A program made the translations under genes and the position numbers. A stretch of DNA of 63,914 nt, counting the filler, from Hyphochytrium catenoides (lineage: Eukaryota; Protista; Hyphochytriomycota), in NCBI GenBank assembly GCA_900088475.1. It is 9 parts of 9 records of this genome, joined end to end, with 100 filler letters (N's around TTAATTAATTAA, not from the genome) between each part and the next. Parts side by side here need not be neighbours in the genome. Positions count along the whole stretch, not along the records: positions 14,795 to 39,791 come from FLMG01002038.1; 8 more parts are not named here. The stretch is one strand, 5' to 3'. The notes beneath the pieces are model-generated. The model worked only from the letters and a program-made list of their open reading frames with translations. It was not told the origin of the DNA and ran no database searches. Shown here in pieces: positions 14,534-35,971 of this stretch (position 1 is its first letter; each line of letters starts with the position of its first letter).

Positions 14534-14976
14534 CTTAGTCCTTCTTCAGAGCCTTACAACGATTGCAGCCAAGCAAAGAGCAACACTTAGAGCTGCATCT
14601 ATTACCTTAGCGCAGGCGGTGCATCCACAATCAGCTAAATAAGGCTCTCCTTTCTCCAGATTATCTTCAAAGGGACTGTCATCTACTTCCATGGNNNNNN
14701 NNNNNNNNNNNNNNNNNNNNNNNNNNNNNNNNNNNNNNTTAATTAATTAANNNNNNNNNNNNNNNNNNNNNNNNNNNNNNNNNNNNNNNNNNNNTAGGGA
14801 AGAAAAGAGAGAGAAGGCTGACAAGATCACGGGAAAGACGGAAAAAGGAGAGAAAGAGAAAACGAAAGAGAGAGGGGAAAGAAAGAAAGCGAGAGAGAGA
14901 GAGTGAGAAAGACAAGCAAGAACAGGGAAAGCCGAAGAAAGAGGGGGAGAGAGAGAGGGAAAGAGAGACACAGTAG

Positions 14977-15466
14977 CTACTTAACGGTATCTGCGCCAAA
15001 AAGACGTCGCATTTCCAGATCTGGATTCAGACGCTTCACATCAACGGCCAAGAGGAGAGAGAGAGGAGAGCGCTGAGATCCCTCTCTCTCCCCCGTGACC
15101 TCATTCTTTTCTTCCGTTAGCTGTAGGAGAGAATCAAGATCCTCTTGCTCCTCTTCTCTCTCTCTCTCTCGCCCTCGGGCTGATCCTTTTCCTCTACAGA
15201 GAACCAAACAGTAAGCAAGGCCGTATCTTCTTGAAAGGCAGAAGTCGAGCCCCCTCTTTCTCTCTCTCTCTGTCTCCTCTTCTCGCTCTTTCTGTCTCTT
15301 TCTCTCTTTTCCCCTCTGTCTCACACACACACTCGGCCTCTCTCTCTTTGCCTTGCTCTCGTCCCCTCCTATCTGTCTTTCGGTGCCTCTCCCTGCATGT
15401 GTCTTTCTTTCTCCACTTTCGCCTCTCCCGCTCTCCTTTTACCGACGGGGTATTCTCACGAGATGG

Positions 15467-15523
<57 letters not shown>

Positions 15524-15909
15524 CTTCCCCTGCTTCTTCGAGCTACCTCTTTCTTGATCCTCCTTTCCTCTTCTTCTTTCCTTTGGCTCCTTCCTTAGTC
15601 TCTAATGCTGCTGTGTGAGCGGTTGAAGAGAGAGACGACACGTTTGCTCCCCCAGTCTCTTCTTCTTTCTCCTCTCTCTCCTCCTCTGACTCTGAGTCTA
15701 GCAGCTGGACACAGCTGATGAAAAAGAGAGAAAAACGAGAAAATCGGGAGGACAAAAAAGAGGAAGAGAGAGGAAAAAATGGGAGGAGCAAGAAAAGCAG
15801 AGGGAGAGAGAGATAGTAACTGACAGCCACAGAGAGAAAAAAGACTACGTCCATCTAGGCCGCCAGCACATTCGGAGAGAGACAGAGAGTGACATGTGGA
15901 GAGAGAGAG

Positions 15910-15940
<31 letters not shown>

Positions 15941-16263
15941 AGAAAGAAGGGATTACCAAAGAATGTGCCGCAAAAACGCCCGCGGACGGCTTCACCTCCT
16001 CCTCATCTTCTCCTTCCGATTCGCTGCCATAACCAGAGTCGAAAGACTCACTCTTCAGCTCTTCTGAAGCTTTGATCTTGTTAAGGCGCGCTGCATGTCG
16101 AAGAGACCTGAAGACAGAGAAAAGTCCCCTACTTAATCCCACATGTAACCCGCTGGATGATGAAGAGAGAAAGAGAGAGAGAGAGAGAGAAAACAAGAGA
16201 GAGAGAGAGAAAACGAGAGAGAGAGAAAGACAGAGAAGAGAGAAAGCGAGAGAGAGATAAAAA

Positions 16264-16305
<42 letters not shown>

Positions 16306-16548
16306 AGAAAAGTAACCGGACATGGTTCAGATCCAAAAGGACAAGGTCCACAAAACACTATGCTGCTTTCTTATTATGCAGTGGATTCTTGATGCATGGA
16401 CACCGGAGCTCCTCTGTCTCTTCAGAGCAAGGGCCTGCAACCGCCTTAATACTCTAGAGCTGCCTCCGCCGCGTTGAATCTCTAGAAAGCGCGTCTCAAG
16501 AAAAGCTTCAATTCTCATTTCTGAAGCTTTTTTCTGCATTCTTGCCAA
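14977..16548 (-). CDS. Hypothetical multi-exon protein fragment, acidic low-complexity
   Basis: Non-repetitive coding-like segments separated by CT-rich introns (MRIEAFLETRFLEIQRGG; SLRHAARLNKIKASEELKSESFDSGY; LLAVDVKRLNPDLEMRRLFGADT); no family recognised. Confidence 0.45.
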
Positions 16549-17055
16549 GAGTTCTGATGAAGATTGACAAAATGACGGGGAACTATTGCGACTATATAAA
16601 GGCTGGTGGGGGAACTGCTAAAAGGATTACCACCTGTAAATAAGAACTATATGATACTATAATGGCTTTCTAGCAGGTAAGGAGTTCATGGTCCTTGGGC
16701 TTATTATGTGTTTCAACAAGAAGACAGAACTAAATACGTCATTATTAGGTAAATGAGAATCAGTTCCGTAATTATTTGAGCGATTATCGAGGGGTTGATA
16801 ATCCAAAGAGATCTCTCCTAGCTAATAGCGGAGAACTAGGATCGAGTTTGTAATGCCAAATAACGTTGCAGAAGGAAGGGGTAACTCCGTAAAAGCGAAT
16901 CGAAGTGTGAAGCTAGTTTACCCCACGTGGAGGCCCACTGTGTTCTGATCTCTCTCTNNNNNNNNNNNNNNNNNNNNNNNNNNNNNNNNNNNNNNNNNNN
17001 NNNNNNNNNNNNNNNNNNNNNNNNNNNNNNNNNNNNNNNNNNNNNNTGTCTCTCT

Positions 17056-17087
<32 letters not shown>

Positions 17088-17413
17088 CGTCTCTCCGTCT
17101 TCTCGCTCTGCTTCTTGCTCCTCTCGCTGGCAGTTCAAAGGCTTGACGCGTGGACAACTCGGCCAAGTTGAAGGCAGAAGAGACACGCGAGGAGAGAGAA
17201 AGAAAAGGCATGACAAATTCATGAGAGGGAAAGAGAGAGGGAGACGAGCCTCAAGAACTGAAAAATCCTTGACTTCCGACGGAGCAACCACTCTCTCCTC
17301 ACAAAGACACTTTCCAGCTGTGCAGACAAGGGAGAGGATTGGGAGAGAGAAAGACAGAAAAGAGAGAAAAAGAGAGAGAGAGTCGGCAATCGAGGAGAGA
17401 AGAAAACGATACG

Positions 17414-17834
17414 ATGAAGTCTTATAATGGACAGAGCAGCAGGAAACGGGGAAGAGCCTTGCTGCTGCTCTATCTCCTAGTGATCTCTCTTACTTGCGGA
17501 TTGTTGGCAGTAGCTCAGGTCTCCGGGCCATATCTCTCTATTTTTCTCTCTCTCTTCCTCTCTCCCTTTATCTCTCTCTCTCTCTCTCTCTCTTTCGTTT
17601 CTCTTGTCTCTTTCGTTCCTCTCTTAAACTCACTCAACCTGTGTGCTCTCTTTATCTGTCTCTCTCGCGTTCCCTTTCGCTGACATTTCTTGCTCAATCT
17701 CTCTTTCTCTCTCTTTCTCCGTCTCTCTCTGTCTGTCTCTCCCCTTCCTCATCCTCAGGCTGTCGAGATAGAGGCTACGGAGGAATGGCAAGAAGTGCTG
17801 CCGGGCCAGTCTATCCCTAAGGTTTGCGTTCTCG

Positions 17835-17883
<49 letters not shown>

Positions 17884-18549
17884 TATTCTTTCTCTTCTCT
17901 CCCTCTTTACCCTTTTTCTCTCTCACACACACAATCTCTTACTCTCTCTCTTTGTCTCTCTCTCTTTGTCCCTCTCTCTTTCCTCACGCACCTCCCAGGG
18001 TCTGCATGTTAGAATGGATCTCTCCACAGGAAAGACCTACGCTAAGCTTCTCACAAAAGAGAGAGAGGAAAAGAAAGAGGACTCTGTCTCGCTCCAATCC
18101 ATAGAAATAACCCCAAAGGGACAGCATCTCGTGCTAAAAGAGAAAGAAGAGAACACGTCTCTCTCTCTCTCCCCGCACTCAGACCTGGAGGTTCGGAAAG
18201 AAAAAGAAGAAAAGAGAGAAGAAGCGATGAGCGTAATGGAAAAGGTTCTTCTTTCTCTCCCTTCGGAGGGAGAAGAAGAAGGAGAGAGAGAGGGAGAGAG
18301 AGAGAGAAAAGGCGCAACCATAAGCGGAAAGGCTCTGGAGCAGCTGAAGCGAAGTCTTTCTCCTGAAAAATTTCAACAACTTCTGGAAAAGCTTTGGACT
18401 GACCGACAGCAGCTCCTGCAGCAGGCCATGGATTCCATGAGGGTAAGAGAATAGAGAAGAGAGAGACACAGAGAGAGAGAGAGAGACAGAAAGAGAGACG
18501 GAGAGAGAGAGAGAGAGCGAGAGAAAGAGAGAGAGAAGAGAGAGAGAGA

Positions 18550-18601
<52 letters not shown>

Positions 18602-18602
18602 A

Positions 18603-18647
<45 letters not shown>

Positions 18648-19039
18648 AGTACGTGATTTTCGATAGAGAGAGGGTGAAAAGGGAGGACATGACAAACGAG
18701 GAGGGAGAGAAGGGAAAGAGAGAGAGAAAAGACACACAGAGGAAAAGAGAGAGCAACAGGGCTTTTTCCACGTCTTTCTTATTCCTGTGGCTCTCTCTCT
18801 CTTCCTCTACTCTAACTCCTCTTTCTCCCTATCTTTCTCTTTATGCCTCTTACATATTTTCTCTGTTTTTCTCTCCCTCTGTGTGTCTCTCGCGCTTTTC
18901 TCCTCTCTCTTCTGTTTCTCTATCCTTCCTTTCTCCTGGATCTCTCTCTCTTCTATCTCCTTTATTCGCGCGCTGTTCTCTGCTTATGTTCTCTCTCTCC
19001 CTCTCTTCTTTCCTCTCTCTCTCCCTCCCTCCCTGTCTT

Positions 19040-19114
<75 letters not shown>

Positions 19115-20413
19115 GTCTCTGTCTGTCTCTCCTCTTCCCCCTTCACCCATTTCCGTTACTCTCTCTTTTTTTTCTCTCTCTCTCTCTCTTTCCAGAATGA
19201 AGCGGACTATCAGCGAGAGCTCATCCGCCGGATCCAGTCTCCTGACGCGACAACAGAAGAGCTGTTGAGCGCTTTAGAAGAAATAGAGTGGGAGGTGCAA
19301 GATATAGACAAAGGGAGAGACTTTCTCAAGGGAGGAGGTCTCTCTTCTCTCTCTTCTCTTCTCTCTTTCTCTTCTCTCTCCGTTCAGGGGAGAGCTGCTT
19401 GGGCTCTTGGCTCCAGTGTCAGGCACGACGCTGCGCTGCAGAATATGGCGCTGGGAGAGGGAGTGATGGAAAGACTCGGAGAGATGCTGAAGACGGAGAC
19501 AGAGGGAGAAGAGGCCACTGAGATGAAGAGAAAGGTAAAGAGTCTCTCTCTCTCTCTTTCCTTGTCTCTCTTAAACGACCCGTTGCCTCTGATTCTCAAT
19601 GTTTAAATTTGTGGGTCATACCTCCTCAATATCTGTCTCTTCTATTTCTCTTTATTTCTCGTTGCCTTGGTCCAATACCTTCTTTCTCTCCCCCCTCTCC
19701 CCCTTTCTCCACCCTCTCTCTGTCTCTCTCTCTGTCTCTCTCTCTGTGTCTCTCTGTCTCTGTCTCTCTCCCTCTTTCTCCTCCCCCCCTCCCTCTCTCC
19801 CTCTTCTTCTCCCTCTCTCTGTCTCTCACTCGCATTCCCCCTCTCCGCCATCTCTCTCTCTCTCTCTCTCTCTTTTTTCTAACTGATTCTCTCTCACAGG
19901 TCCTCTATGCAGTGGGCAGTCTTATCCGACACAGTCCGTTGGGGCAGGAGAAGTTCTTGGCTTCATCCCTGGAGAGAAGCATGCTCGACATTCTCTCCGC
20001 AGACACCGCCTCTCTCAAGCTGAAAACCAAGGTTCCTCTCTCTCTTTCTCTCTCTCGCTCTTCTNNNNNNNNNNNNNNNNNNNNNNNNNNNNNNNNNNNN
20101 NNNNNNNNNNNNCTCTCTCTCTCCCCGGCTGTCTCTGTCTCTCTCTCTCCCCCCTGGCCCGTTTTCTCTTATCTCTAACCGTCTGGATCTCTCCTTCTTC
20201 GCTCTTCATCTATCTCCTTTTTCCTCGTGCGCCTTGCTTTATCTCTCTTGGTTCGGCTGTCTGGGCTGCTGAGTGCCATTTCTCTCTCTCTTCTTTTTTC
20301 CCTGTTTTCCCCTCTAATTCACTATTCTCTTCTCTCTGTCCCTTTCGTTTGCTTGAGCAGTGAATCTCTTTTTATCCCCTTTCTATGTCTACAGCGACCA
20401 ACCATACATCTAT

Positions 20414-20458
<45 letters not shown>

Positions 20459-20465
20459 CTCTCTG

Positions 20466-20547
<82 letters not shown>

Positions 20548-20703
20548 TCCATATTCTTAGGTGATAGATATAGTTCATGACATCATGGAGGAAACTCCTC
20601 AGGGCGGAGTTTCTCTCCCTCTGAAGCAGCTGAAGGATAAGTTCTCTTCTTCTTCCTGGTGTCAAGAAATAATGAGGCATCTTCTGACCCCTGACATGGT
20701 TAG

Positions 20704-20734
<31 letters not shown>

Positions 20735-20772
20735 ATCCTCTTGATTCCTCTCTCTCTCTCTCTCTCTTCTTC

Positions 20773-20810
<38 letters not shown>

Positions 20811-21184
20811 TTCTCATTCCACCCAAACATTCTGCTCTGTAGTATCTATATTTTTTTCTTCCTTCGTCTAGGATCTCTCTCTCTGTGTCTCCCTTTTCAA
20901 CGTTAACATGCCTAACATGTCTATCAACACATCTCTCTCTCTCTCTCTCTCTCTTTTTGCAGAGTTCAGTCCAAAGAGAGAAGTCTCTCCTGACCTTAGG
21001 CTCCGTTCTCTCTTCTTGTCAAAAGAGAGAAGACTGGAAAAAGGCGAAGCTTCTCTCCTATCTCTCGGAAGTTAGGACATTTTTAGAGAGAGAGAGAAAG
21101 AGAGACAGTAATGAAACAGGAAATGCTGAGTTCTCAGACGATCTCCTTTCCCTTGTCTCCGAGCTGGAGGAAAGAGTAAGATAA
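17414..21184 (+). CDS. SIL1: ER Hsp70 (BiP) nucleotide exchange factor SIL1 (armadillo-like)
   Basis: Exons 17414-17518, 17759-17821, 17999-18442, 19196-19534, 19900-20031, 20561-20698, 20963-21184. Signal peptide; SIL1 signature [72 protein letters not shown]. Confidence 0.9.
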
Positions 21185-21728
21185 CGAGAAGTCAGATCTG
21201 GGAGAGAGAAATGTGCAAGAAGACAAAAAGAGAGATTGTAAAAGGAAGGAGAGCTAAAAGGAGAGAGAGAGAGAGAGAAAGAGAAGAAAAGAGGGGAAAA
21301 GAAGGTCATATACTCAAAGTTTTTTCTATTTAATCATTCCGTCTGCTTTGTCAAATGGCCGCGTGTCTCCTCAAAGATTAGAAGAGCAGAAGCTCTTCTT
21401 CGGGGAGGAGAGACGAGAGAGAGAAAGAAAGACAGAGAGACGGAAGGGAGAGAGAGAGAGAGAGGTGACACTCCTTCCAAGCCCCGGAAGCTCCTTCCTT
21501 TTTTCTTTCCTTCTCCCCCAGGGACATAACTACCGCTGTGCCCTGACTTGCTAAGTAACGAAGAACTAAGCCAGAAGGTACATTCGTCGCCCCACCCAGG
21601 CTAACGGCGCTGTCCCCTTCACTCGAACGGGTTATGATCTCCTTCTCTCTCCGCAGAGGTCCCAACGCAGTGATGGGCGAGTGATTGTCCCAGCTTCTAA
21701 ACAGGCGGCTGAAGGCGGACCGAGCAGG

Positions 21729-21900
21729 TCTGAGAGAGAGAGGAACGAGGGCCAGCCGCAGCCTTTAAGCGCCGTCACTAGGAAGAGCTTGAGTCACCGA
21801 TGGTGGGTCTAGAGCCATTCACTAGCTGTGGGATGTGATGGAGACAGTCTTTCTTACTACAGGCGCTCGCTTTTCTCTTTCTCTCTCCGTCTCTCCGCTC
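21729..21900 (+). repeat. Dispersed copy of a ~200-bp repeat unit
   Basis: Shares cgagggccag..cagcctttaagcgccg..ggaagagcttgagtca..agagccattcactagctgtggga.gtgatg..tttcttactacaggcgct with the tandem array at 31721-32176, in the same orientation. Confidence 0.85.
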
Positions 21901-22133
21901 AAATTTTTGTCTTCTCTCTCCTCGAGAAACTGGAAGAAGAGAACAAACGAACAGAAGATGAGTGGAACGCCTACTCTACAGCTTCTCCTCCTTCTACATG
22001 TTCGCGCTCTTCAGCCTCGTCTGTCTGTTTCACCGAAAGCAGAAAAGGGCAAAGATGCGCTCCCAGCAGCGCAGATGACCGCTCTGTAAGAGCTAGTGAG
22101 AAAAATTTTATAAAGACCTCTTATTAGTATGGC

Positions 22134-24020
22134 TCACAACCAAGCCTCTTGCCCTTGCTTAGTCAGGTCGTTGATTGCTTCGTTGATTTGCTGCCGAAGC
22201 ATCTGCTTCTCGTACTTTCTCAAGTTGTCAGAGTTCTTTGTCGCCGTCATTAACGAACTCCCAATCGTAGTGACAGCTGCGTCAGAGGCTGCGATATGCA
22301 GCTGCATGCTTTTGAATCTCCGCCGACACTTTGCCGCATTCTCGTCGATCTGGTCCTGCAGTTTCTTCTCCTGCTCTTGCTGAGCTTTTTCTAACTGTGT
22401 CTGTTTGTTCTCTAACTGTGTCTGTCTGCCTTGACATTCCTCCAAGCCTGTCCGCTGCTGCTCGAAGTTCTCCTTGAGACCGCCGACATCTGACATGACG
22501 CCATCTAAATCACTCCGTATGGAATCGAGAACTGTGTCCTGAACTATTGCTGCTTCAGCCCCATTGGCTTCAGGGGCCGCGAGAACAACCGGTGGAAGTA
22601 CGATGGCAAAGGCTTTCGCCCGATTACCGCTGCCGCTGAGCAGCATATCATAAAAGCTTAACTTGGTGCATGGTTGCTGTTGCCCTAGAAGAGGCGACCA
22701 CACATAAATTGACCGGTCTAACTGGAAGCCTGCAGCATGCTTCGTCTTGACCTCAAGTGGAATGGTTCTGTCCGTCGAAGTTGGTAAGGGTAAGTGGACA
22801 GAGCCATCAGAGTCCTTCAGGTCCGAATGAGTACCATCAATGAGGTAAAGGCGACCATAGAGGCCGCGGTTAAAGCTTGGTTCCAGCAGCTTTTGAGTCT
22901 CCACCCTCAGTTTGTTGAGAAGGCTTTCATAGCCCACCTGCGCCGTAACTTCCTCTCCCATGGTTGAGAATGGAATTTTGAAGACGCCACCATTATGGAG
23001 CGGGACATCGAGCGTCTCCTTCCCCTGCTGCTTGAGCTCGCGTAGGTGCTGAAGAGTGACTTCCTCCATGTCCGCTGGGTCCGCAGGTAGGATGTAGATT
23101 GAGTCTTCAGATGGCACGAAGACAGAAGAAGATAGGAGGAAATTGGGCCCCACAAGATGGACGCTATCTGTGACAGGAGTCTGCGCAGACCCTGGTTGGT
23201 CGCCCATAAAGATGAAGCCTGGAACACGCTGCCTGCGCTTGTTGCTTCCCCTTGAAGAGGGCGCAGCACATAGCTGAAATAGGACGAATTCCCACTTTGG
23301 AGGTGAGTCCGTATGTTCCTTGCTCTTGGCGTGAGTCTTGGTCCAGTGAATCTTTCTTCCAGTCTCTCCTTCGCATTCCTGTTGACACTCCTCGCAATAA
23401 ACTGGGTTCTTCTTCGCTGCCTTCTTCACTGTCTGATGTTGTCCTGTTGTCCTCTGCTTCCTCTTCTGCTTGCGCTGGGAAGCTTTGGGTCTCTCCGACG
23501 ACTTCTTGTTGGCTTCTTCCTCCTCTTTTCCCTCCTCCTCTTCCTCCTGGTGGTCCTCTCCCTCCTCCTCCTCCTCTTCCATTTGTGCGTCTTCCTCAAC
23601 CCCGTCTCTCTCTCTCGAGTCAGGTGGTTGGCTGCTCCGTTGGCCTTGTGTTGCCTCTCGGGAAGATGGTGGTCCAGCAGAAGAAGCTGTTCGTCCGCTC
23701 ACATCACAACTCCTGCTACTGTCCTCTGTTTTTCCATGGGCCTTAGTCCGGGCGCCCCTACTACCAAGAGAGCTTCGGAGTCTGCTAGAATAAGACTCGT
23801 TGGAGAGCGGCACCCTCGTGGGCTGGCGGCGGCCGAGCTCTTGAAAAACGTCGTCAATATGACGGTTAGAAGCTTGCTTCTTGTGAGGAGAATTGCAAGT
23901 CGCGTCAATATGACCAGGAGTCGATGGGGCGGGCGCAGCATCCATAGAGGGATAAGAGAAGTGTCCCGGGCTCCGACTCGTACTTGTTCCCTGACCGTCG
24001 GTAGGTGTCTGCTGCATCAT
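22134..24020 (-). CDS. Intronless 628-aa orphan protein: disordered/acidic N-terminus, basic NLS-like stretch, C2H2-like Zn finger, globular middle, C-terminal coiled coil
   Basis: Long non-microsatellite ORF; QRKQKRKQR; YCEECQQECEGETGRKIHWTKTH (C-x2-C-x12-H-x4-H); heptad-like tail QTQLENKQTQLEKAQQEQEKKLQDQ. Confidence 0.8.
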   Translation of the reverse strand: MMQQTPTDGQGTSTSRSPGHFSYPSMDAAPAPSTPGHIDATCNSPHKKQASNRHIDDVFQELGRRQPTRVPLSNESYSSRLRSSLGSRGARTKAHGKTEDSSRSCDVSGRTASSAGPPSSREATQGQRSSQPPDSRERDGVEEDAQMEEEEEEGEDHQEEEEEGKEEEEANKKSSERPKASQRKQKRKQRTTGQHQTVKKAAKKNPVYCEECQQECEGETGRKIHWTKTHAKSKEHTDSPPKWEFVLFQLCAAPSSRGSNKRRQRVPGFIFMGDQPGSAQTPVTDSVHLVGPNFLLSSSVFVPSEDSIYILPADPADMEEVTLQHLRELKQQGKETLDVPLHNGGVFKIPFSTMGEEVTAQVGYESLLNKLRVETQKLLEPSFNRGLYGRLYLIDGTHSDLKDSDGSVHLPLPTSTDRTIPLEVKTKHAAGFQLDRSIYVWSPLLGQQQPCTKLSFYDMLLSGSGNRAKAFAIVLPPVVLAAPEANGAEAAIVQDTVLDSIRSDLDGVMSDVGGLKENFEQQRTGLEECQGRQTQLENKQTQLEKAQQEQEKKLQDQIDENAAKCRRRFKSMQLHIAASDAAVTTIGSSLMTATKNSDNLRKYEKQMLRQQINEAINDLTKQGQEAWL

Positions 24021-27000
24021 CCCAGCCAGCAGCGGTCTTCTCTGGCGCCACTACACGAGGGTTGGAAGCGCTAGAGTTTTCGCTCTTTCTCCCACTTGGG
24101 CGGCACAGGAAGGGGCGCGCATGAGGCTGTTCAGGAGGACGGCAACAAGACCCGTTGACGACGCAAGGGAAGTTTAAAAAATGATGAGGACTCAAAATCC
24201 CATGTTGGGATGATGATGAGGACTTTGCCGCTGCTGCTTTCTCAATGAGTCTTCTTCTGCGGTAGGACAAGGATAAAGACCATCTCGCAAGGTTTTTTAA
24301 TATTGGTTTATGGACGGAGGAGATAGAGGCACACCCAGGAGAGGACTATAGTCTTTTCTTAGCAACAGCACTAGGAACTATGCTTCTTCTCGTCGAAATC
24401 CACGACGTCCTGCTCCTCGTCTTTTCCTCTCTGCATTGTGGTTACTATCTTTCCTCCCTCCTTTCCCTCAGTCTTCTTTGCATGTTTAAAGACATGGGGA
24501 GATATCAAGTGCATAAGCTTAGGGTTTGGAAGAAAGAGGAAGTGACGGTCAATGCGAGCAGCTGCTGCTAATGAGGAAGTTGAAGAAGCTGCCAAGAACT
24601 AAAGGCTTTGTCTAACATTGTAAATGGCCTCCTATTGTGAGCTTTAGCCGATGACGATGCAGAGAGGCGCACTAGAGGATAGAGGGGAAGACAGAACGAA
24701 GATGGAGAGAAGACAGGGAGGCTGGACAAAAGAAAGAATAAATAAGAAGAAGACCACCAAGAGCTCCATCATGCTTCCGCTTCCGCCCCCCACCGACCAC
24801 CCAGAGCCTTTTGGGCTTAGTAGTCTTCTCTCTTCAGTGCGTCATCAGTAAGAAGGTGCAGCTCTACAAGGAAGGACGACAGAGATGATGGGCGGCTGCC
24901 TTGCAGGGAGGAGCGGAACAAAGCTGAGGAGGAGGAGGAGGACGAGGCGCGACAAGGCACGTCCTAAGGCCAAAGAAGCAGGCGCTGCAACAATGATCTG
25001 GAGAGGAGGAGAGACGCTCGTTGTCTCCTTCTTCATGTCTGCAGCGGGGTCGATGTCTTACGACGTAGGAGTGATGATGATGGTGAAGGCGAGCAATGCA
25101 TCAGCATCAGCATGAGGGCAAGAACTCTACATATGATGTTTTTCTTTACTTTATAAAATCTAAGAAGATTTTGATGAGGTGTAATAAATCAGTACAGCCA
25201 AAGAATTGTTCAAAATTTACTAGGATATTATTACTATAAGTTTTAAGGTACTATATTTTGGGGTGTTTTTTCCTTCTTGCTCTTCTTAGGATAGGAGTGA
25301 TTTGCTCGTTTTTTTTTATGGCTCTACGAAGATTAGAGATTTTTAACTATTATCGCTACTAATAACAGACTAATTCTAAAAGAAGAAGAAAGAGAAAAAG
25401 AAGAAGAGGAAGAAGAAGAGAAGAAAAGCTAAGAAGAAGCTTTAGGCTCTTCCATCATCTCAGCTCGAACCTGCTCCCTGATCATCATCAGTAAAGTTTT
25501 ATTAGGCAAAAAAAAAATAAAAAAATCATTCTTTTATTTATTTTATGCGCACTGTGTGGCCTTTATTATGAAGAAAATATTATATAAAAAAAGGGTTGAA
25601 AAACTAACTTCCCTAAAACTGCCGTAACGAATTAAAACTATTTGTTTTATGAAGGTAGCTACTATTTTTTTCTTAGAAGTAATAAATAATAATGGCACGC
25701 ACCCAGGTTTCAAAATAGCAAGAAGGTGAGTGCACCTTCCTCCTGCTGCTGCCGCGTCATCAGAAGACATCGCGCTAATAAGCGAGAAGCTCCTCTCTGT
25801 GCTTCAGACTTTGTCAGCCTTATTGTTCCTCGCTAGCTCGTACACTTAGTCCCTCTTCGAAGCCTCACCCGACTTTGATCTACATCCTAAACCTCTCGCT
25901 GACTTTCTGATGAGGGATGATCTTGTAGAGACGGATGGCGAAGAAGGGACAGCAATGTTAGAAGAGGACCGCGCTGCCGTGGCGCGTCATCGGCCCGCCA
26001 CATCTGAAGCAGGTGCTGCCATTCCCCACTCGTTATTCTTCTTCTCGTCAATGGATTTGGTGGGGACTGAGAATCTCTGGCGTCAGCGTCTCCGTCTTAT
26101 TGTTCTCCGCCGCTGCGTTACTACGAACCAACGAAGGACAGATTGCTGATGATGATCTGCTTCAGGACCCATGACCTCGAGATAGGGAGGGTCAGATACT
26201 GCAGCAGCTGCTGGTAATGGCCTAGCCGATGGCGGCGCTTACGCGTCATCAGGACTTCTTAAACCCTCCTTGCTAATGAAAAAAGTACGTTCAATCGATG
26301 GCGCATCTCCCTCCCCTGGGTTGTACCTACTAAACAGTTACTGGCTTCTTGTCGTCATGGGTGACGGTGCGTTCTCTAGCGTAAACCATAGCTAAGTTTT
26401 CACTCCTGCTTCCTCGAATGCAAGTGTTGACGGAGTTTTCTTTTGCTCGCCAAGCTGATGTTGAAGAAGGAGAAGGACCACGTACCCTGGGGATAGTAGC
26501 CCCCAATGGAAGGAGACAAAAGTGATGAAAAAAGAAGTGGAGATGAGACCAAAACAAGAAGCAGGAAGGGGACCAAAAGGCAGGGCTTCATCTTCCAGAA
26601 CCTCTTCCTCCTCTCCCGCCAAGGCAGCGAATAAACGGGCTCACTCTTTGGGCTCTTTCTTTCAGAGACCCGTTGCTGCGGCGCTAAGAATGATGCTGCC
26701 TCAAGAATCCCGTCATGCTTTCTTTATAACAGTCTTTTACATACTCTAAGCATGGCTTATGATCTCATCTTGATCAACCAGAAAAAGAAGAAGCTGCTCA
26801 TCATCCATCTTTTCACCCAGTCAAATAGGCCTGCTTGTAGACAGAGCTCGAACTCTGCCTCCAACAGAGTTTCCTTAAAGATCACTGCGAGCAGCTTTAT
26901 TAGGACTTTGCGGTTAGGCTGCGAAGTAAGACGACCATCATCCTGCCTTTATCTCATACTATCGATCTCAGAGAAGCTTTGCGCTCTATTATTGCAGTCC

Positions 27001-27235
27001 CTACCCTCAGCAGACGCGGCGCTTTCTTCACACTACGGAGCTCCTTCCATCTTCCCGTCTAAAGTTGTAGTAGGACGCGCCTATTCACAAACGATTGCAA
27101 AGCCCTGAGCAAGAACGCACGCACGATCGTTCGGTTGCTCGAGGCATCGCTACTAACTAAGAACCCTCACTAGGCAGCAACGGCTGCTGGAGGGGCGGCT
27201 GGAGGGGCCATAGATCATTGGTCACAAAGGCAACG

Positions 27236-29992
27236 ATGAATGGCGAGGGTCAGCATGGTACCCAGGCACCCTATACGGACAGCCACGAGCAAGAAGGCTA
27301 TGATGTGTTTTTGGCGTACCTGGACGCCAAGAAGAAAGGCATAACCGATCTCGACCCAGCTTTTAAAGAGAAGGCCCTGCGGTTCGTATCTGCCAAACAC
27401 AGGACCCTAGGTTTGACGGTACTGAAGGATAGCGTACGAGGGCTTTTAACTAACAGCAAGAGGCTGCCTACACGAGACGACGAGCAGCCTGAGCGGGTCA
27501 GCTCTCCTCCCTTCTCCTCCGGCGAGACCAGTCATCGCCAGGAAGAAGTCAGGGGAGAGGAGAACTTTAGAGAAGAGCTGAAAGATAAGAGCTCTGACGT
27601 CTCCACTTCTGCTAGGAGAACCAGTCAGGACTCTCCTCATGACTGTTTTGAGAACTCGCGACCTTGCGACTCAGGAAGTGCCCTAAAAGAGGAAGAATGC
27701 AGCCAACATTATCAGGTTATTCAGGTGAGCACTGAGAGGGAGAGGTAGTTATTAGGTTCCTTGATCCCAACGCAAAGTCCTCGTGTCCGAATGAGGCCGA
27801 CGTTGACTGTCCTGCTTCTCTCGAGTCTAATCTTCTCTATTCGGCCCACAGGACCTCGAGGCTACGGTGAAGAAGCTCATGACTGCCAGGGCCCAACAGC
27901 AACAGGTCATCGATCAACAGCAACGAACTCTTTGCCACATGGAAGCTCAAATGAAAAACTTTCACCTTGAGCTGCAGGTTAGACATCGCTTGTAAGGAGG
28001 CGATAGTATAGGAACCTGCTTTTGGCCCGACGCAGTCTTAGTGATCCTTCTCTTCATGATCTTGTTCAAGGAATTGAGAGGCAACATTAGGGTCTTGGTG
28101 AGAGTGCGCCCGATGTTTCCATCCGAAACCTCGCAAGGACGCACCATGGAAACCGTCCGTTGCCATCCCAATGGTGAAGCTCTTACTATCTCAATGCCAG
28201 GGACTGCTGAGAAGAACAAGACAAAGACGCATTACTCCTTTGACAAAGTCTTTGCGCCCTCCGCAAATCAAGAGGTTGTCTTCCAGGTGAGCATCTCGCA
28301 AGTCCTTGGCAGAGGAGGGACTTCTCCTAAACCAAGCCGTATGGCATATCTCCTCCCTGTACCCGCCCTACTGCCTCCTGCTTGCTGTGGTTCCTTGGAA
28401 CCGTCCAGGCCCTTGAAGACGTCCTACGTTCAACATTGGACGGCTACAGTGCCTGCATCTTTGCGTATGGGGCGACGTCGTCAGGGAAAACATTCACGGT
28501 GGGTGAGCAAGGGATACTTCTCTACCCTCCACAGCCTCCTCCTTTCACTTCCTAACATGTGGGACGAGCAACTGCGGATTGAAGCTTCCCCCTTCCAACT
28601 TGCTCCTTTGGCAACCTTAGGTCCTAGGGATGGATGGAGATAGTGGCACTCGTTCAGGGCTCGTTCCAAGGTCAATCATGTATCTAAAGGGCCAAATCGA
28701 GCAGTACGCCCACATGGGCTGGGACTTCAGTCTCTCCTTTGTTTCGTATCTCGAAGTCTACAATGGCGCTATAACGGACCTTCTTGCCAAAGGAGCTGTA
28801 GATGAAGCTCCTAGTCCAAGCATCAAGATTGATGGTGGGTAAACGAACCGTGATATGGGTCCAAGGGTCGTACTACGCGGGCACTCACCGATCAAAGAGC
28901 ACGATAACTTTTACGTGCAAAATTTAATGGAGATTCCCTTAGCGGACCTCCTTGACAAGGGTCTCACGGGCCTGCACGCTAGGGAACCCACAAGAGCCTC
29001 CACGGAGAATAACTCCTCGTCCTCTCGGAGCCATACAGTCCTGACTCTTCACCTTCGCGGTGAGTTGTTAGAGTCATCAAAAAGCGGAAATTCATGCATG
29101 AACCTGCTCGCTCCTCCCCAACCATACTACTTCTTCCGACAGGAAGAAAGAGGAACCCTGAAGGGGAGGTTGAGGGCGTGCTTGTTGCTGGGGACCTCGC
29201 CTTTTGTGACCTTGCAGGGAGCGAGCGTCTGACAGACCCCAGCACTGCTGACAAGACCAAGAAGGAGACAGGCTCAATCAACCGTTCGAACCACACTCTC
29301 CAAAATGTTCTCTCTGCCCGAGCAGAAAAGAAGAAACACGTATGCTGCTGCAGTTAGATTACCGTCATTGTTTTCCAGACGCTGACCAGTTCGCGCTTTC
29401 ATATCACTGATGTTACCCTTTCTGCCCGCTGCCAATCTCTCCAGATACCTTACCGCGACTGTGTGCTGACCAAGCTGCTGAAAAGATACCTCTCTGGTGA
29501 TGCAAAATGTGTCATGATAGTAAGCTTTTCTCAAGCCTTCTCGTCCCTTTTAGTTGAACTAACGGTTCCTTCTTGCTCTCCCATCCTCGACCACGACTCA
29601 CTCGATTGTTATGGAAAGGCCAATATCTCCCCGTCCCCCAAGAGCTACTCCTTCACGAAGGCGACGGTTGAGTTCGCTCATCAGGTGGGCCCCAAATTGT
29701 CCTCCCTTCTCGCCACACAGTCATTATTACGATCTGACTAATGATGTGGGGACTTGTTTCCTCGTAGATAATGAAGAAATGTGAGCTGGGAAGAGCCAAA
29801 AGAAATGTGTCGACGTCAACAACGCGGATGCAGACGCCCTTTAACGATGATAAGGAGAACGAGCTACCACTAAGTGGTACTGGACGTAAGGCAAAAGCTT
29901 CAGGAGCTTCCAAGATGTCGTCCAAAGAGTCATCACAACGGATGTTAAGATCAACAAGGCAGATGAAGGCGCGGAAGTTGGAGGAGAACTGA
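27236..29992 (+). CDS. Divergent kinesin-14 (C-terminal motor, Kar3/Ncd/KIFC-type)
   Basis: Ten exons (27236-27724, 27852-27977, 28071-28286, ~28409-28498, 28621-28834, ~28898-29059, ~29143-29340, ~29445-29519, ~29619-29684, ~29768-29992) splice into one open frame. Neck LQELRGNIRVLVRVRP, YSFDKVF, P-loop IFAYGATSSGKTFT, YLEVYN, switch I SSRSH, switch II DLAGSER, HIPYRDCVLTKLL, C-terminal CELGRAKR. Confidence 0.92.
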
Positions 29993-31589
29993 ATATGCCC
30001 TATTCCGGGTCGTATGCCATTGTTGCACCAGTCCATCGCCACTCTTTTCTTTCTCTGGTACTGGCGTCAGGATCTGGGGCCCCATGAAGAAGAATCTGCG
30101 GATTCATTATCGGGCGCTAACATTAATGGGAGCACTGGCACAGAGGAAGTCTTCAGAAAGATAGTCTACGACGATCGGGAAACAAGGAGGTTAGCACCTG
30201 ACGCCAAGATGCAAAGTGATGCTTGGGACAAGGAAGAGCACGGGGTCACTCGTGGGTAGCATATATAGAGGGAAGACGCAAAGCTCGCTCTTCTTATTAC
30301 TAACGAGCAGTCTCTTTCAAATATCATTGAATCTACGCATGCTTCAGTTGCTAGCTAGACTGAATGTGTCATAGTGCGCCATACAAAGCTCTCACTATTT
30401 GGTTGACTTGCGTGTCAGACCTGGTAAACCATGGCTGGTGACCTTTCAGTGACCGTGGAGCCCTTTAACATCTATGCAAAGAATCATTATTATTAGAAGA
30501 CAACGTCCCTTCTTCCTCAAACCCTTGCACGCCTCGTCAAGGGAAACACTCTCTGAAAGCTACCAAGTCAAAAGGTAGGCTTATGCCGCCAAGTAACGGC
30601 GAAGATGAGAAAGAGAAAGAAAGAGGTTGGTGGTGGCTCTCCTGAGCGCCTCCGGATTCGAAGCAATTTGGCCCTACAATAGGGAAGAAAGCACTGAGTC
30701 CTGTGCCAGCCTTTCACAGCAGAGACAGAGACAACTATCCTTGCCGCCTGGCTTGATCAGTAGGAAGGAGGAGGCTCTTGGCCCAGACGGATGGATAAAA
30801 GCAGTGTCCTCATTGACTAACAAAGGACTACGCGATGATGTACAGATTCTTTGTTTCCCGAGGGGCAGCGCTATGACCTTCGTGCTGGCCGGGGCGGGCG
30901 GACGGCTGATACTTCGTCGTCTGCGTCACGCAGTTCGAAGGCTATCCAACTCTGTCTCCCCTTTCCCTTGCCGCTATCTACCCAGTTCTTTGCGGGTGCC
31001 AGAGGCTGAGACTGACCAAGCAAGTTCAAGAGTGAGGAAGGTCAGGCCCATCCTGTAACTGCGCCAGGCAACCCTAATGTCTCACAAATATTTTTCCACT
31101 CTATCGAATTCCAGCAGACAGCTCTCTCTCTACCGACGAAGACATTCCTCTTCTTGCGCTTTCATCAGCAGGTGCGAAGGCTTAAGCGAGAACAGCTGAC
31201 AGAGCCAGAACAACTGACAGTAGGTCTGAAGGTGCCCATAAGAACTGATGAGTCCACTGCTCTATTGCGGCTGCAAAGGACGGAAGAAAGAAACTTCTAC
31301 TCAGGACTCCGTCGCTGGCAGGAATGGATGGGAATTGGAGGCTGGAGATCTCAAAAGAACGGGAGAGAAGATGAGAGAGGAGACAGGGCACAAACGGAAA
31401 CTGAACCAGTGCGTTGGCCAGCAGTATAGGTGGCGATGACCTGCTAGTAGGACGTGTTCTCTATCCTGCTGGCGCTCTGCGTGGGCTAATGGCCCCTGTA
31501 GACTTCTTGATTGTTGGAGCTACACGCTAACTTTCTGACAGTATCTGCACTCACCGCTTTCGTTTCGCTGTGGGTCCGACATCTAAAGA

Positions 31590-31710
31590 CGCTTCACCTT
31601 CTTCATCCTTCTTCTGTGGGCCTGGCGCAGCTTCTTCTTGTCGACGATGATGCTCAAACAACTTGGACAACATCGACCCAACCACCTGCTCCAGCTAGAC
31701 CTCTGCTCGC
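31590..31710 (+). repeat. ~120-bp duplicated segment; second copy at ~32475-32592
   Basis: ttcttctgtgg..cctggcgc..cttcttcttgtcga.gatgatgc.caaacaacttggacaaca..gaccc.ac.acctgctccagct occurs at both sites. Confidence 0.85.
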
Positions 31711-31720
31711 TGGAAGCTTC

Positions 31721-32176
31721 AGCGCCCGCAGTAGGAAGAGCTTGAGTCATCGATAGATCAAGAGCCATTCATTAGCTATGGGACGTGATGATTACTTTCT
31801 TTCTTACTACAGGCGCTTCGCTTATTTTCTCTCTCTCGCTCTCTCTCTCTCTCTCTCGCTCTGTCTTTCTCGGTCTCTCTCCGCCTCTCCTTCTCTTCTG
31901 AGAGTAAGGAGCGAGGGCCAGGCCCAGCCTTTAAGCGCCGCGCTACGAGGAGCTTAACTCATCGATGGATCTAGAGAGCCATTCACTAGCTGTGGGACGT
32001 GATGAAGACTGACTTTCTTGCTACTACCGGCGATCGCTTCTCTTTTCTCCTCTTTCTCTCTGTCTTTCTCTGTGTCTCTCGGCCCTCTCTTTCTCTTCTG
32101 AGAGTGAGGAGCGAGGGCCAGGCCCAGCCTCTAAGAGCTGGCACTAGGCAGAGCTTGACCCTTCGTCGATAGATCC
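31721..32176 (+). repeat. Tandem array of a ~200-bp unit (partial + full + partial copies)
   Basis: ttctcttctgagagt(a/g)aggagcgagggccaggcccagcct recurs at 31891 and 32091 (200-bp period); agagccattca.tagct.tgggacgtgatg at 31761 and 31975. Confidence 0.9.
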
Positions 32177-33946
32177 ACTTAAGAAAGAAGAGAGGAACCT
32201 CAGCTCGATCGGGCAGCCTCCTCCTTCAAACACGCTGCTGTCTGTAGGGATCATGCCAGAACCTTATCGTCTGGCCGTTGACCGCAAAGCAGGCAGAAAA
32301 GAGCGGAAGAAGCGCTCGCAGAAGCTCAGTCTTCCTCCCAATTCTCAGCGTCTTTCTCTCTTTTTTCACTCTTACTAGTAAGCGTTTAACCTGGACACTG
32401 CTGGCTAGCTGCTGCGGCACCTGGCATAGGATTCTCCTGCTTCTGCTCTTGCTTCGTCATCTGACAGTTGACTTGCTTCTTCATTCTTCTTCTTCTGTGG
32501 AGCCTGGCGCCACTTCGTCTTGTCGATGATGATGCGCAAACAACTTGGACAACAAGGACCCGACAACCTGCTCCAGCTTGGGCGTCTGCTGGGATCTTTT
32601 CGGGCTTTGAAAGCGTCAAACGTTGTCTTCTTTGACCTCGATGATGACTTCCTCCACGTCATACTTCCCGTGGCAGCAAGCGGTAAGCACTGGAGAGTCT
32701 GCGGAGGGAAGAAGTGACGCTTATGCAATCTCTCATCAGATGAAAGGAAGGAAGAAGCCTCCTCCTTCCACGCGCTCAGTTGTCGCTCGGATGTTGCTTC
32801 TCTCTCTCCTCATCTGAGCTAGCTTTGGTCTGCTGCTGCTGTTGCTCGTCGTCCTCATCTTGTTCCTCCTCCTTCTTGCTGCTCCTGCTCTCCTCCAGCT
32901 GCTCCGCTGTCATCCAGTGGCCTCACCTTCCTCCTTCTTTTCTAAACATCTTCATCCTCTTCTTCCTGCGCTGGCCTCGTCGGCCGTGGTTCTTTCTTTT
33001 GTCTCACTCTTCACCATTTCTGGCTCTTCTTCCCCTTTCTCCCAGCGTCTGGCTTCCAACTCTCCTCCTGAATGTCGTCGCGTGGCTCCTCGACATCGTA
33101 GATAGCGTCTCACCGACCAAACCAGTGATGAAGGGAGGTCTTCTGCCCTTCTTGGGCTCTGTAAGCTTGGCAAGAGAACATAGATCGAGGATCTGCAGGC
33201 TGCTGATGCCGCCCAACGACCACAGGCTGATGATCACAGTTCAGAGCAGAATGGACCGCCGCGCTGATGAGTAGTCTGACGCTCCATAAAGAGCCCAAGC
33301 AGCCTAGCAGAGGATGATGCAGCACCCAGCCCCACTTACTTCTACTGCTTCCCTTGCCTTATGGGCAGCAGGGCAGGAGGAAGTGAACCAGCCGCTGGAC
33401 TCCTCTCAAAGGAGCCAGCCGTCCATGTAACCTCACCGAAGGCCTCAGAGAACAGAGACCTGACCTTGTGCCGCAGCAAGCTACCATGTCCAACTCACGG
33501 CTCCTGTCGTTCGCCTAACTTGGTGGGAAGAAGCGTGTCTCTTGAGAAAGAAAGGTCACACTTAGAAGGAAGAGGACTGTCGTATGATGATGAGAGCTCT
33601 GTTTCTCTTTCTCCAGGTCTCTCTCTCTCTCTCTCTCTCTCCAGACCGTGGCGGCTGAGACCTCAGCCCGAACAGCATGAAACCTATAGCGTCTGCATCG
33701 GTGCAGGAAGAGCGAGCGCTGGCTGATGTCTCGGAGAATGTTCACATCTATTTATTCATATTTATATATACAAAGTGTTAGCTCTCCTGGTTGCGCCACT
33801 ATTGCGCCGGAGAAGAAGAAGAAGAAGAGACAGCGCAGGCCATGAGCAAAGCAAAAGGCAAAAAGTCGAATGGCCGACGATGGTCTCGCTCCTTTCTTGG
33901 TCAAGGGCCTTAACCACCATCACGGCTTGCCTGGACCGACCCATCC

Positions 33947-35158
33947 TCATACATCCAGGGTCCACGAGGTGAGCGAATGCTGCTCCTCAAGGTTGCGATA
34001 AACCACGGCTATCACCCTCAACACCGTGCCAGGCACCGTCCGCCTCTTAACCTCCAGAGTCATTTGATAGTTCATCCCAGCCACCAACTGCCGCTGTGCG
34101 GAGATGATGCGTTTAAGATCTACCGGGCCGGCCTTACCACGGCCATGCAGTGAATTGTAAGCCTTCACTGCTTCGTCAGCTGCCTTGACGACCTCCTGCG
34201 AGGCAGGGTTGGTTGCCGAGAATCCACCGATTAGTTCTCCTCTGGCTTGAGGAGCGTCATTGGGACAATGAAGGGCCAAAGACAGGTACGACCACGAGGT
34301 GACAGAGTAGCTTTCGTATGGATAGGTGCTAATCCCTCTTCTGTTCACCACGGCGGAGGCCTGGATCTGCCTGCAGGAGCCATATCGCGGCACGAGCACA
34401 AGGTCCAGTTTATAGTTATTGCCTCCTGCCACCACCTGCTGCTGCGCGCCGCTAATCGTGTTCAGGTCCAAAGGTACGGAAAACTCCTTCAAGTTGAGGA
34501 AGAACACTGCAGCTCTCGCTGCACCAACAACCTTAGAGGACTTGGGATCAACTGACGATGGTCCAGCAGCAGCCAGAGCCCGTGTCTGCCGCAGCCGTTG
34601 TCCAGAAGGTTGAGTCAGCCTTGGGAGTCCTTGGTCATTAAGAAGCTGGTACTGACCCTGGAGGTCCTGATAGACCACGACTCTCTTGACCGCTGGGGCG
34701 CCTGTTGGGCTCATGCTGGCGTACTCATTGAGTGCTAGTTGCAGGACGTACTTCCCACCGCTCCTCTCCTTCTGATACTGAGCCGAGATCACTCTGTTGA
34801 GTTGGACAGAGCGGAAGAGGTTCTCCGGTTGTCCCTGCTTTTGCTCAAGATAAATTTGGACAGCGTTCACTGCTTTCCTCGCGACCGCACTGCGCGGGTC
34901 CTCTATGTCCATATATTCCCAACGCTGCGGCAGGCTGCCCGACGATACATAATCAGCGGGAGCGTGTGGAGCGGGTGCTGGTGGTGCTGGTCCATCATCC
35001 AACTCGCTTGCGTTGGTAGATCTCGGTAAATAGTTGTTGGTCACGTCCTGAGCGGTGGTGGATCTCTGTATGGATGCACCGTCAGCGATCGAGCTGGCTT
35101 GCAAGAGAACGACAGAGGCTGCCAGAAGTAGCGTTGAACAACGTAGCAGAGTGGTCAT
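33947..35158 (-). CDS. Secreted multi-domain cystatin (three cystatin-like repeats), intronless
   Basis: Signal peptide MTTLLRCSTLLLAASVVLLQA; repeats with ISAQYQKERSGGKY (degenerate), ISGAQQQVVAGGNNYKL and IGGFS...ISAQRQLVAGMNYQM (QxVxG cystatin loop). Confidence 0.88.
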   Translation of the reverse strand: MTTLLRCSTLLLAASVVLLQASSIADGASIQRSTTAQDVTNNYLPRSTNASELDDGPAPPAPAPHAPADYVSSGSLPQRWEYMDIEDPRSAVARKAVNAVQIYLEQKQGQPENLFRSVQLNRVISAQYQKERSGGKYVLQLALNEYASMSPTGAPAVKRVVVYQDLQGQYQLLNDQGLPRLTQPSGQRLRQTRALAAAGPSSVDPKSSKVVGAARAAVFFLNLKEFSVPLDLNTISGAQQQVVAGGNNYKLDLVLVPRYGSCRQIQASAVVNRRGISTYPYESYSVTSWSYLSLALHCPNDAPQARGELIGGFSATNPASQEVVKAADEAVKAYNSLHGRGKAGPVDLKRIISAQRQLVAGMNYQMTLEVKRRTVPGTVLRVIAVVYRNLEEQHSLTSWTLDV

Positions 35159-35971
35159 GATGCCTTCTTCTGGTTGCAAGGACGCAAGGAAATGACAGGA
35201 CGCTGTGGTGGTGGTCTTGTCGGTTGTCCTCGCGCGGCCGCAGCTGGTTGTCGCAGGTTCAGCCGTTGCTGGAATGTTTTGAAGTGAGAGAAGAGACTGC
35301 CGACCAAGAACGAGGCGGCAGCATCTACCTAGGATATCTCTTTATATTATATTACAAAGGAATGAATGAAGGAGACGAGTCGAAGTGCTGCTGCCAATGA
35401 CCTTGATCGTTATCCCAGGATGTTGCTGGCCCTCTCCACTCAGGAGAAAGGACTGAATTGACCTCCGATGCACCAAAGACGGCCGGTCTCTCACTGTCTA
35501 TGATCGATGGAGACGGCTTCATCAACTGCGGACGAGGTATAGTTCTCTGCATTTATTGTGGCTGACGATAACCCTTAATGAGAGTATCGCATGATCCCAG
35601 ACGTTGCGGCAGCAGCAGCAGCACCGCGGGTAAATGAGTTCGTCTTCAGCTATGAACGCTGGCTACTTGCTCTTCTCCGCTCCAAAAATGAAGGTCACTG
35701 CAAGCTGAATCTCTTCTCTTCTTCTCTCGTTCGTCAGATGAACATCATGCAGGTGCTCCGAGTGCTAGTGCGATAAGATTGCGCCGGGACACTACCAGGG
35801 ACTAGAACATGGGTCCTTGAGGGAAGAGTAGTACAGGCGAGCGAGGATTGATCAAAGAGAGAGTAGAAAAGACCAGATAAGGAAGAGGAGAGAAAGGCGG
35901 TCAACAAATTGAGAAACAATGAGAGAGAGCCCGAGGTAGAGAGAGAGAAAGAAGAGAGAGGGAGAAAGAGA

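Follow-up and report, generated by a model that had tools for sequence, protein, structure and literature searches.

Diverged repeats around an orphan gene and a kinesin-14 gene of Hyphochytrium catenoides: probable remnants of old local duplications

We analysed a 63,914-nucleotide stretch of DNA from Hyphochytrium catenoides (GenBank assembly GCA_900088475.1; the whole stretch is called the window below). A block at positions 21729-32176 of this window carries a unit of about 200 bp, here called R, once at its left end and as a short tandem array at its right end, with two divergently transcribed genes, an orphan open reading frame (ORF) and a kinesin gene, in between. Our results make it likely that the repeats are what is left of old duplications of non-coding intergenic DNA that took place at this locus only, and that they are neither the ends nor the targets of a functional cassette. 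The orphan and the kinesin gene are ordinary single-copy residents; that they are neighbours does not amount to evidence of a functional connection. The block lies on a single contig (FLMG01002038.1, here C736, window 14795-39791) of a fragmented assembly of 61 Mb in 4759 contigs. Both of the convergent (3'-to-3') intergenic regions beside the divergent gene pair have a common, diverged segment of ~350 bp, made up of R and a flank. The pieces of this segment, and of a second local duplicate (A and A'), are as follows:

21729-21900, plus strand: R0, a single unit of ~170-200 bp that ends in a CT-rich tail
31718-32175, plus strand: the tandem array R1+R2+R3', ~2.4 units
31718-31880, plus strand: R1, 5'-truncated
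31884-32083, plus strand: R2
32084-32175, plus strand: R3', the first ~85 nt of the unit only
21954-22081, plus strand: left flank segment, homologous to 32184-32336 and colinear with R0
32184-32336, plus strand: right flank segment, homologous to 21954-22081
31598-31707, plus strand: A, left copy of the second local duplicate, which abuts R1
32476-32590, plus strand: A', right copy, 878 bp from A

All copies of R are on the plus strand, and repeat finding, alignment with MAFFT, self-BLASTN (E values of 6e-29 and 4e-21) and nhmmer agree on them, far beyond what chance would give. The sequence-only reading, which had been made from this DNA before our analysis, reported a ~200-bp unit at 21729-21900 and an array in the same orientation, and both were recovered by these four methods, with the array at 31718-32175. 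Each site is in a convergent intergenic region: R0 in the one that separates the left neighbour gene (+) from the orphan (-, stop at 22134), and the array in the one that separates the kinesin gene from a cystatin gene, ~2 kb past the kinesin stop. Over aligned columns the pairwise identity of R0, R1 and R2 is 86% and that of R3' is 75-85%. The copies thus differ by 14-25%, at roughly equal distances from one another, and are not the products of a recent insertion. Since the copies differ by single-nucleotide indels in the MAFFT alignment, the unit is non-coding. Each R unit terminates in a CT-rich microsatellite tail.

Although the ~200-bp unit had been correctly recognised, the homology extends ~130 bp beyond it (21954-22081 matches 32184-32336), and A/A' is a further duplicate. 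The flank pair was detected by nhmmer with an E value of 1.1e-4 (for a 4.2-kb target) and has 78% identity in aligned columns, with many gaps. Because the homology of R runs on colinearly into the flank, what was duplicated is a stretch of at least ~350 bp of chromosome and not a discrete 200-bp element. The left flank segment is 53 nt downstream of the orphan stop and probably lies within the orphan 3' untranslated region. The two copies of A bracket the array and are 89% identical in aligned columns. Both are open in two minus-strand frames; codon scoring gave no coding signal, and most of the differences between them are amino-acid-changing in either frame, so A/A' is probably non-coding. 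For the same reasons a duplicated terminal exon of a minus-strand gene was rejected as an explanation of A/A'. The right-hand intergenic region has therefore gone through several rounds of local duplication, in which the R unit was amplified head-to-tail to ~2.4 copies and the ~110-bp A/A' piece was duplicated at its 878-bp spacing. The R units end in CT-rich tails, and tracts of this kind abound in the genome; the likely mechanism would therefore be slippage during replication, unequal crossing-over or ectopic repair involving them.

When R0 and the whole 1-kb array region were compared with the 61-Mb assembly by BLAST, the unique part of R was found on C736 only, and ~100 other matches all fell at query positions 203-315 or ~450-508, i.e. 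in the CT-rich tails of R1 and R2. The assembly searches therefore give a total of ~3.4 R units, all at one locus. Such a genome-wide search had been proposed as a check by the sequence-only reading; R proved not to be scattered, and both genes proved to be single-copy. The best-conserved 22-mer of R, with up to 3 mismatches allowed, matched the three local copies and one site on another contig (C2894), and a reversed-pattern control matched none; the C2894 site was rejected as a fourth copy because its similarity to R ends within ~20 bp. An exact-pattern scan of public metagenome contigs gave no match to the R core, and R does not resemble the abundant repeat families of this genome. Because the unique part of R is confined to this locus in the assembly, a motor has no array on which to act. 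Satellites may drop out of a fragmented assembly, but an array of large size would normally be represented by at least a few collapsed contigs, and there are none.

The residence of the two genes is supported by native features of the block, which has a GC content of 0.50 (background 0.49) and contains an orphan with codon usage like that of the rest of the genome. Codon scoring found no coding signal inside the block beyond the orphan and the kinesin, and neither Pfam searches nor the coding scan found a transposase or reverse-transcriptase signal there. We therefore excluded a mobile element with terminal direct repeats, since the repeats are 75-86% identical, mobility genes are lacking and everything is single-copy. 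The locus most resembles low-copy intergenic duplications that arise by slippage or unequal exchange. Its copies are few, local, non-coding, diverged, CT-tailed and in the same orientation, the homology continues beyond the unit, and tandem amplification occurred on one side; it differs from them in that the R core is slightly better conserved than the flank. The significance of such an event is small, i.e. an old, locus-restricted intergenic duplication around two resident genes in the repeat-rich genome of a poorly sampled eukaryote.

Several points weigh against this interpretation. The R core is somewhat better conserved than the flank (86% versus 78%, with far fewer gaps), which could result from constraint or gene conversion instead of neutral decay. 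The presence of R in the same orientation in both of the 3' intergenic regions that bracket the pair may not be coincidental. The order of events may also have been either of two, with R duplicated to the other side or with the block inserted into an R array. Finally, the assembly, in its 4759 contigs, could lack collapsed satellite arrays.

The second of these orders of events leads to the strongest alternative, which we regard as unlikely: a segmental insertion, in which a 10-kb two-gene block entered a small array of R that was already there, or came in with a long target duplication, so that R0 and the right-hand array would once have formed a single intergenic region that separated the left neighbour from the cystatin gene. 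Direct repeats in the same orientation bracket the block exactly, the R-plus-flank homology is colinear on both sides, and CT/GA microsatellites are scarcer in the block than in the left neighbour or the background. CT/GA dinucleotide runs make up 0.3% of the block; the corresponding values are 11.7% for the left neighbour and 2.8% for 57 other loci (181 kb). The scarcity of such microsatellites in the block, to which the sequence-only reading had drawn attention, is therefore real, but the poor zone extends past the right-hand repeat and through the cystatin gene to ~35180, so that its limits are not set by the repeats. Most of the effect comes from two genes without introns and a kinesin gene whose introns are short. 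Against an insertion there is also the 14-25% divergence of the R copies, which would make any such event ancient, the native character of the GC content, codon usage and intron features (the kinesin has an intron position in common with an in-genome paralogue), and the lack of transposon hallmarks in a block whose genes are single-copy and which gave no transposase or reverse-transcriptase signal. The milder form of the sequence-only reading, a segmental rearrangement through recombination between the repeats, fits the data and comes near to the explanation that we prefer, but the repeats are too diverged for a recent event of this kind.

The better conservation of R would also be explained if R were a selected cis element (for 3'-end formation, termination or a boundary) or a small RNA gene that delimits the divergent pair. 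We consider this improbable. Blocks of the R unit are 86% conserved among three copies, the adjoining duplicated flank is more decayed, and the position of R is symmetric, in both convergent intergenic regions. However, R occurs nowhere else in the genome and is therefore not a general signal, and its distance from the preceding stop is inconsistent, at 545 nt from the last ORF of the left neighbour and ~2 kb from the kinesin. Neither an Rfam scan of the whole piece with a permissive cut-off nor a tRNA search gave anything at the repeats, the sole Rfam-scan matches being sub-threshold, miRNA-like and within GA/CT tracts. Consensus folds of the three copies on both strands (RNAalifold) had covariation terms of +0.78 and +2.0 kcal/mol, which are unfavourable, although with n=3 the power of this comparison is low. 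Gene conversion between copies 10 kb apart explains the conservation equally well.

The claims made for the two genes themselves could be assessed from their structure. That two divergent genes lie between the repeats and that the orphan is intronless were both confirmed, and its ORF is coding-like. The kinesin gene was modelled by three-frame reading and a splice-site search, and its searches were run exon by exon. The model has the following exons:

27236-27724, plus strand: exon 1, N-terminal tail of 163 codons, with no domain or paralogue match
27852-27977, plus strand: exon 2, short coiled-coil stalk and neck, ending ...MKNFHLELQ
28071-28286, plus strand: exon 3, neck-motor junction ELRGNIRVLVRVRP; Pfam Microtub_bd and Kinesin both match
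28409-28502, plus strand: exon 4, P-loop AYGATSSGKTFTV
28628-28834, plus strand: exon 5
28898-29059, plus strand: exon 6, switch I, SSRSH
29143-29339, plus strand: exon 7, switch II, DLAGSER
29445-29519, plus strand: exon 8, IPYRDCVLTKLL
29619-29741, plus strand: exon 9, motor end NISPS...VEFAHQVG, then 16 codons and the stop

The nine exons form an intact coding sequence of 1689 nt (562 codons and a stop). The eight introns are all GT-AG and 63-127 nt long; six donors are GTA/GTG with a purine at +3, and those of exons 2 and 5 are GTTAGA and GTGGGT. As the motor ends 16 codons before the stop, it is C-terminal. The protein has the kinesin motifs RVRP, Walker A (GATSSGKT), SSRSH, DLAGSE, HIPYRD and NISPS; Walker A is kept, with the Q and a G of the canonical GQTGSGKT substituted, and helix alpha-4 is altered (INRSNHTLQNV). 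The neck, KNFHLELQ followed by ELRGNIRVLVRVRP, closely fits the kinesin-14 neck consensus (..LHN...ELKGNIRV.CR.RP). In exon 3, Pfam Microtub_bd scored 35 bits (cut-off 27), and the best solved-structure match was Ncd. Pfam Kinesin matched four exons with low per-exon scores, and in a genome-wide PF00225 scan the exons on C736 were above the family score cut-off. By its domain order and neck the window kinesin is therefore an intact, diverged kinesin-14, as the sequence-only reading had held. It is like Ncd, Kar3 and KIFC1 in its C-terminal motor, in the neck (FHLELQ followed by ELRGNIRVLVRVRP) and in its intact Walker A, SSRSH and DLAGSE motifs, and unlike them in the GATSSGKT P-loop, the altered helix alpha-4 and a very short stalk coiled coil of ~42 residues. 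With Walker A, switch I, switch II and the neck intact the protein is probably an active motor, and family membership, the neck and the C-terminal position of the motor suggest that it is probably minus-end-directed.

Kinesin-motor matches were found on ~57 contigs, an unusually large complement for 61 Mb, and several of these have kinesin-14-type necks. The exons of the window kinesin had 100% matches only to themselves, i.e. the gene is single-copy. Throughout its length the nearest in-genome paralogue is a gene on contig C1822 (locus L051), with 42-48% identity per exon. This is a canonical kinesin-14, with RRKMHNLIQ followed by ELRGNVRVFVRTRP at the neck and YGQTGSGKT as its P-loop, and it has one intron position in common with the window kinesin (phase 0, directly before ELRGN). 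The level of identity and the common intron position indicate an old split from the C1822 gene and not a recent duplicate. The tail, stalk and C-terminus of the window kinesin had no match among the other kinesin loci that were fetched. A GAT-type P-loop (AYGATGTGKT) is also found in a KIF22-like gene of this genome (locus L006).

The orphan and its features are placed as follows:

22134-24020, minus strand: orphan ORF, intronless, 628 codons
22140-22556, minus strand: predicted C-terminal helix/coiled coil, residues 489-627, with a predicted local distance difference test (pLDDT) score of 74-96 in residues 510-590
23331-23396, minus strand: zinc-finger-like C-x2-C-x12-H-x4-H pattern, residues 209-230, which reads CEECQQECEGETGRKIHWTKTH
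23457-23507, minus strand: basic stretch, residues 172-188, which precedes the zinc-finger-like pattern

By our own arithmetic, the chance of 628 open codons is (61/64)^628, or ~1e-13 per start, and in all three thirds of the ORF the codon-position GC and codon preferences resemble those of other genes of the genome. The orphan is single-copy in the assembly. No relative was found by Pfam (E<=0.01), by word search or in a protein atlas (searched with the whole protein and with the central domain, which gave sub-threshold leads only), and a HMMER search of 1.84 billion representative proteins gave no credible relative; two HMMER matches were judged uninformative, one a repetitive protein that hit a single 28-residue stretch five times and the other an acidic low-complexity match. 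The N-terminal half of the protein is disordered, acidic and basic, the centre is mixed alpha/beta of low confidence and the C-terminus is a long helix. Single-sequence AlphaFold2 modelling gave a mean pLDDT of 44.7 and was confident only in the C-terminal helix.

The sequence-only reading had given the orphan a C2H2 finger, a nuclear localization signal and a coiled coil. The basic stretch, the C-x2-C-x12-H-x4-H pattern and the C-terminal helix are all present, but the C2H2 assignment has no significant Pfam match. The pattern is non-random (it appeared in 2 of 20000 shuffles of the orphan) and has the C-x2-4-C-x12-H-x3-5-H spacing of classical C2H2 fingers. When the finger region alone was searched against Pfam nothing was significant, the best match being to a KIN17-type finger (E 1.1, 10 bits), and the zf-C2H2 neighbours of the orphan in the protein atlas were sub-threshold, at 0.81-0.83. 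The finger is without the usual hydrophobic core (F/Y-x-C ... F ... L), the F and L positions being C and R, and only one such pattern occurs in the 628 residues. Tandem fingers are usually needed for sequence-specific DNA binding. A single atypical finger therefore gives no basis for claiming that the orphan binds R in a sequence-specific manner. We regard the orphan as a lineage-restricted and probably nuclear protein that ends in a long coiled coil and carries a single zinc-finger-like pattern. The best database identity of the conserved KIF22-like kinesin (L006) is 43-46%, spread over amoebae, echinoderms and oomycetes. Since this kinesin reaches no more than 46% identity and a word search gave no homologue for the cystatin gene, the lineage is poorly sampled and 'orphan' is a weak label. 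The analysis thus yields as by-products a nine-exon model of a divergent kinesin-14 with GATSSGKT, a coding-like protein of 628 residues for which no relative could be detected, and a caution that orphan calls in a poorly sampled genome are weak.

A functional relation between these parts may nevertheless be considered. R-plus-flank could be a locus-specific functional element (a boundary, a 3'-end element or a platform bound by the orphan) that co-regulates a lineage-restricted adaptor and kinesin-14 pair, an arrangement that would be functional and not necessarily selfish; we think this very improbable. Such a pair may be compared with Cik1 and Vik1, the non-motor partners of Kar3, in which the coiled coil precedes a C-terminal motor-homology domain. 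The likeness is that a nuclear-looking coiled-coil protein is encoded beside a kinesin-14, whereas the coiled coil of the orphan is at its extreme C-terminus and no motor-like domain was detected in the orphan.

Least credible of all is the selfish segregation module that the sequence-only reading had put forward, in which the orphan, as a DNA-binding adaptor, would bind R, recruit the divergent kinesin-14 and pull R chromatin poleward as in maize Ab10. In its favour, the kinesin-14-type motor is diverged with intact catalytic motifs, the orphan combines a coiled coil with a basic stretch and a non-random zinc-finger-like pattern, and a tandem repeat adjoins both genes. Against it, there are only ~3.4 R copies, old, equidistant and all at the locus, both genes are single-copy, the kinesin split from the C1822 gene long ago (42-48% identity), the single finger has no Pfam or other family support, the kinesin coiled coil has only ~42 residues, that of the orphan follows the globular part of the protein (the reverse of the order in Cik1/Vik1), and adjacency is the sole tie between orphan and kinesin. 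In maize Ab10 drive the motor gene evolved recently on the drive haplotype. The window kinesin, single-copy and with an old paralogue split, is not a recently evolved or amplified motor gene, and no large target arrays on chromosome arms were found in the fragmented assembly. The likeness to the KINDR/knob180 and TRKIN/TR-1 systems of Ab10 (PMC7462060, PMC11839137) lies in a diverged kinesin-14-type gene near a tandem repeat; maize knob arrays reach tens of megabases, at sites away from the motor gene (PMC7462060), whereas here all of the ~3.4 units adjoin the gene, the assembly yielded no separate array and no drive haplotype is evident. If true, such a module would be a second, independent kinesin-14 drive system, outside plants, but the copy-number and divergence data make this very unlikely.

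ORF reading and Pfam scans gave the gene order on C736 as left neighbour (+), orphan (-), kinesin (+), cystatin gene (-) and repeat-rich DNA. The remaining features of this order are:

~17.9-21.2 kb, plus strand: left neighbour gene, multi-exon, with its last ORF ending at 21184
between orphan and kinesin: divergent intergenic region of 3.2 kb
33947-35179, minus strand: cystatin gene, intronless, 410 residues, secreted; Pfam Cystatin, E value 4.8e-18

The left neighbour has very long CT/GA-microsatellite introns between its exons (window 14795-21300), and the assembly has runs of N within it near 16.96-17.05 kb and 20.06-20.11 kb. Its Fes1/armadillo Pfam matches are weak and sub-threshold; the SIL1 label that it had been given is compatible with these matches but not proven by them. 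The cystatin-gene protein has several cystatin domains with QVVAG-like motifs and an N-terminal signal-like segment, and a word search of protein databases gave no homologue. SAG/SRS domains were not found in the assembly, which makes a coccidian like Toxoplasma unlikely as the source. The ~4.2 kb between the kinesin and the cystatin gene had no convincing coding signal by codon scoring. Within it, the ~1.9 kb from the kinesin stop to A (29742-31597) is without a Pfam match and has weak coding-like scores in the plus frames 29768-29989 and 29890-30084; this piece could be a long 3' untranslated region or contain unrecognised exons.

An AT-rich island is present at ~25100-25730, in the divergent intergenic region. 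The block had been said to contain decayed TA-rich DNA, which is correct as to composition, but the island is not simply decayed, as it holds a dispersed element:

25346-25495, plus strand: AAG-rich 150-bp dispersed element, in the AT-rich island and unrelated to R

This element has at least 50 copies genome-wide with 86-98% identity and common boundaries, several of them close together on some contigs. The repeat-rich DNA at the right end of the contig (window 37900-39791) contains three AAG-rich tandem units of ~610-660 bp. An ORF in these units (38881-39474, minus strand) encodes a protein with at least 96 diverged copies genome-wide (36-91% identity, most 45-70%), many of which share contigs with the 150-bp element (C2899, C2953, C2940, C274, C3799, C300 and C1399). 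The family, which has no Pfam match, is probably an abundant family of transposable elements.

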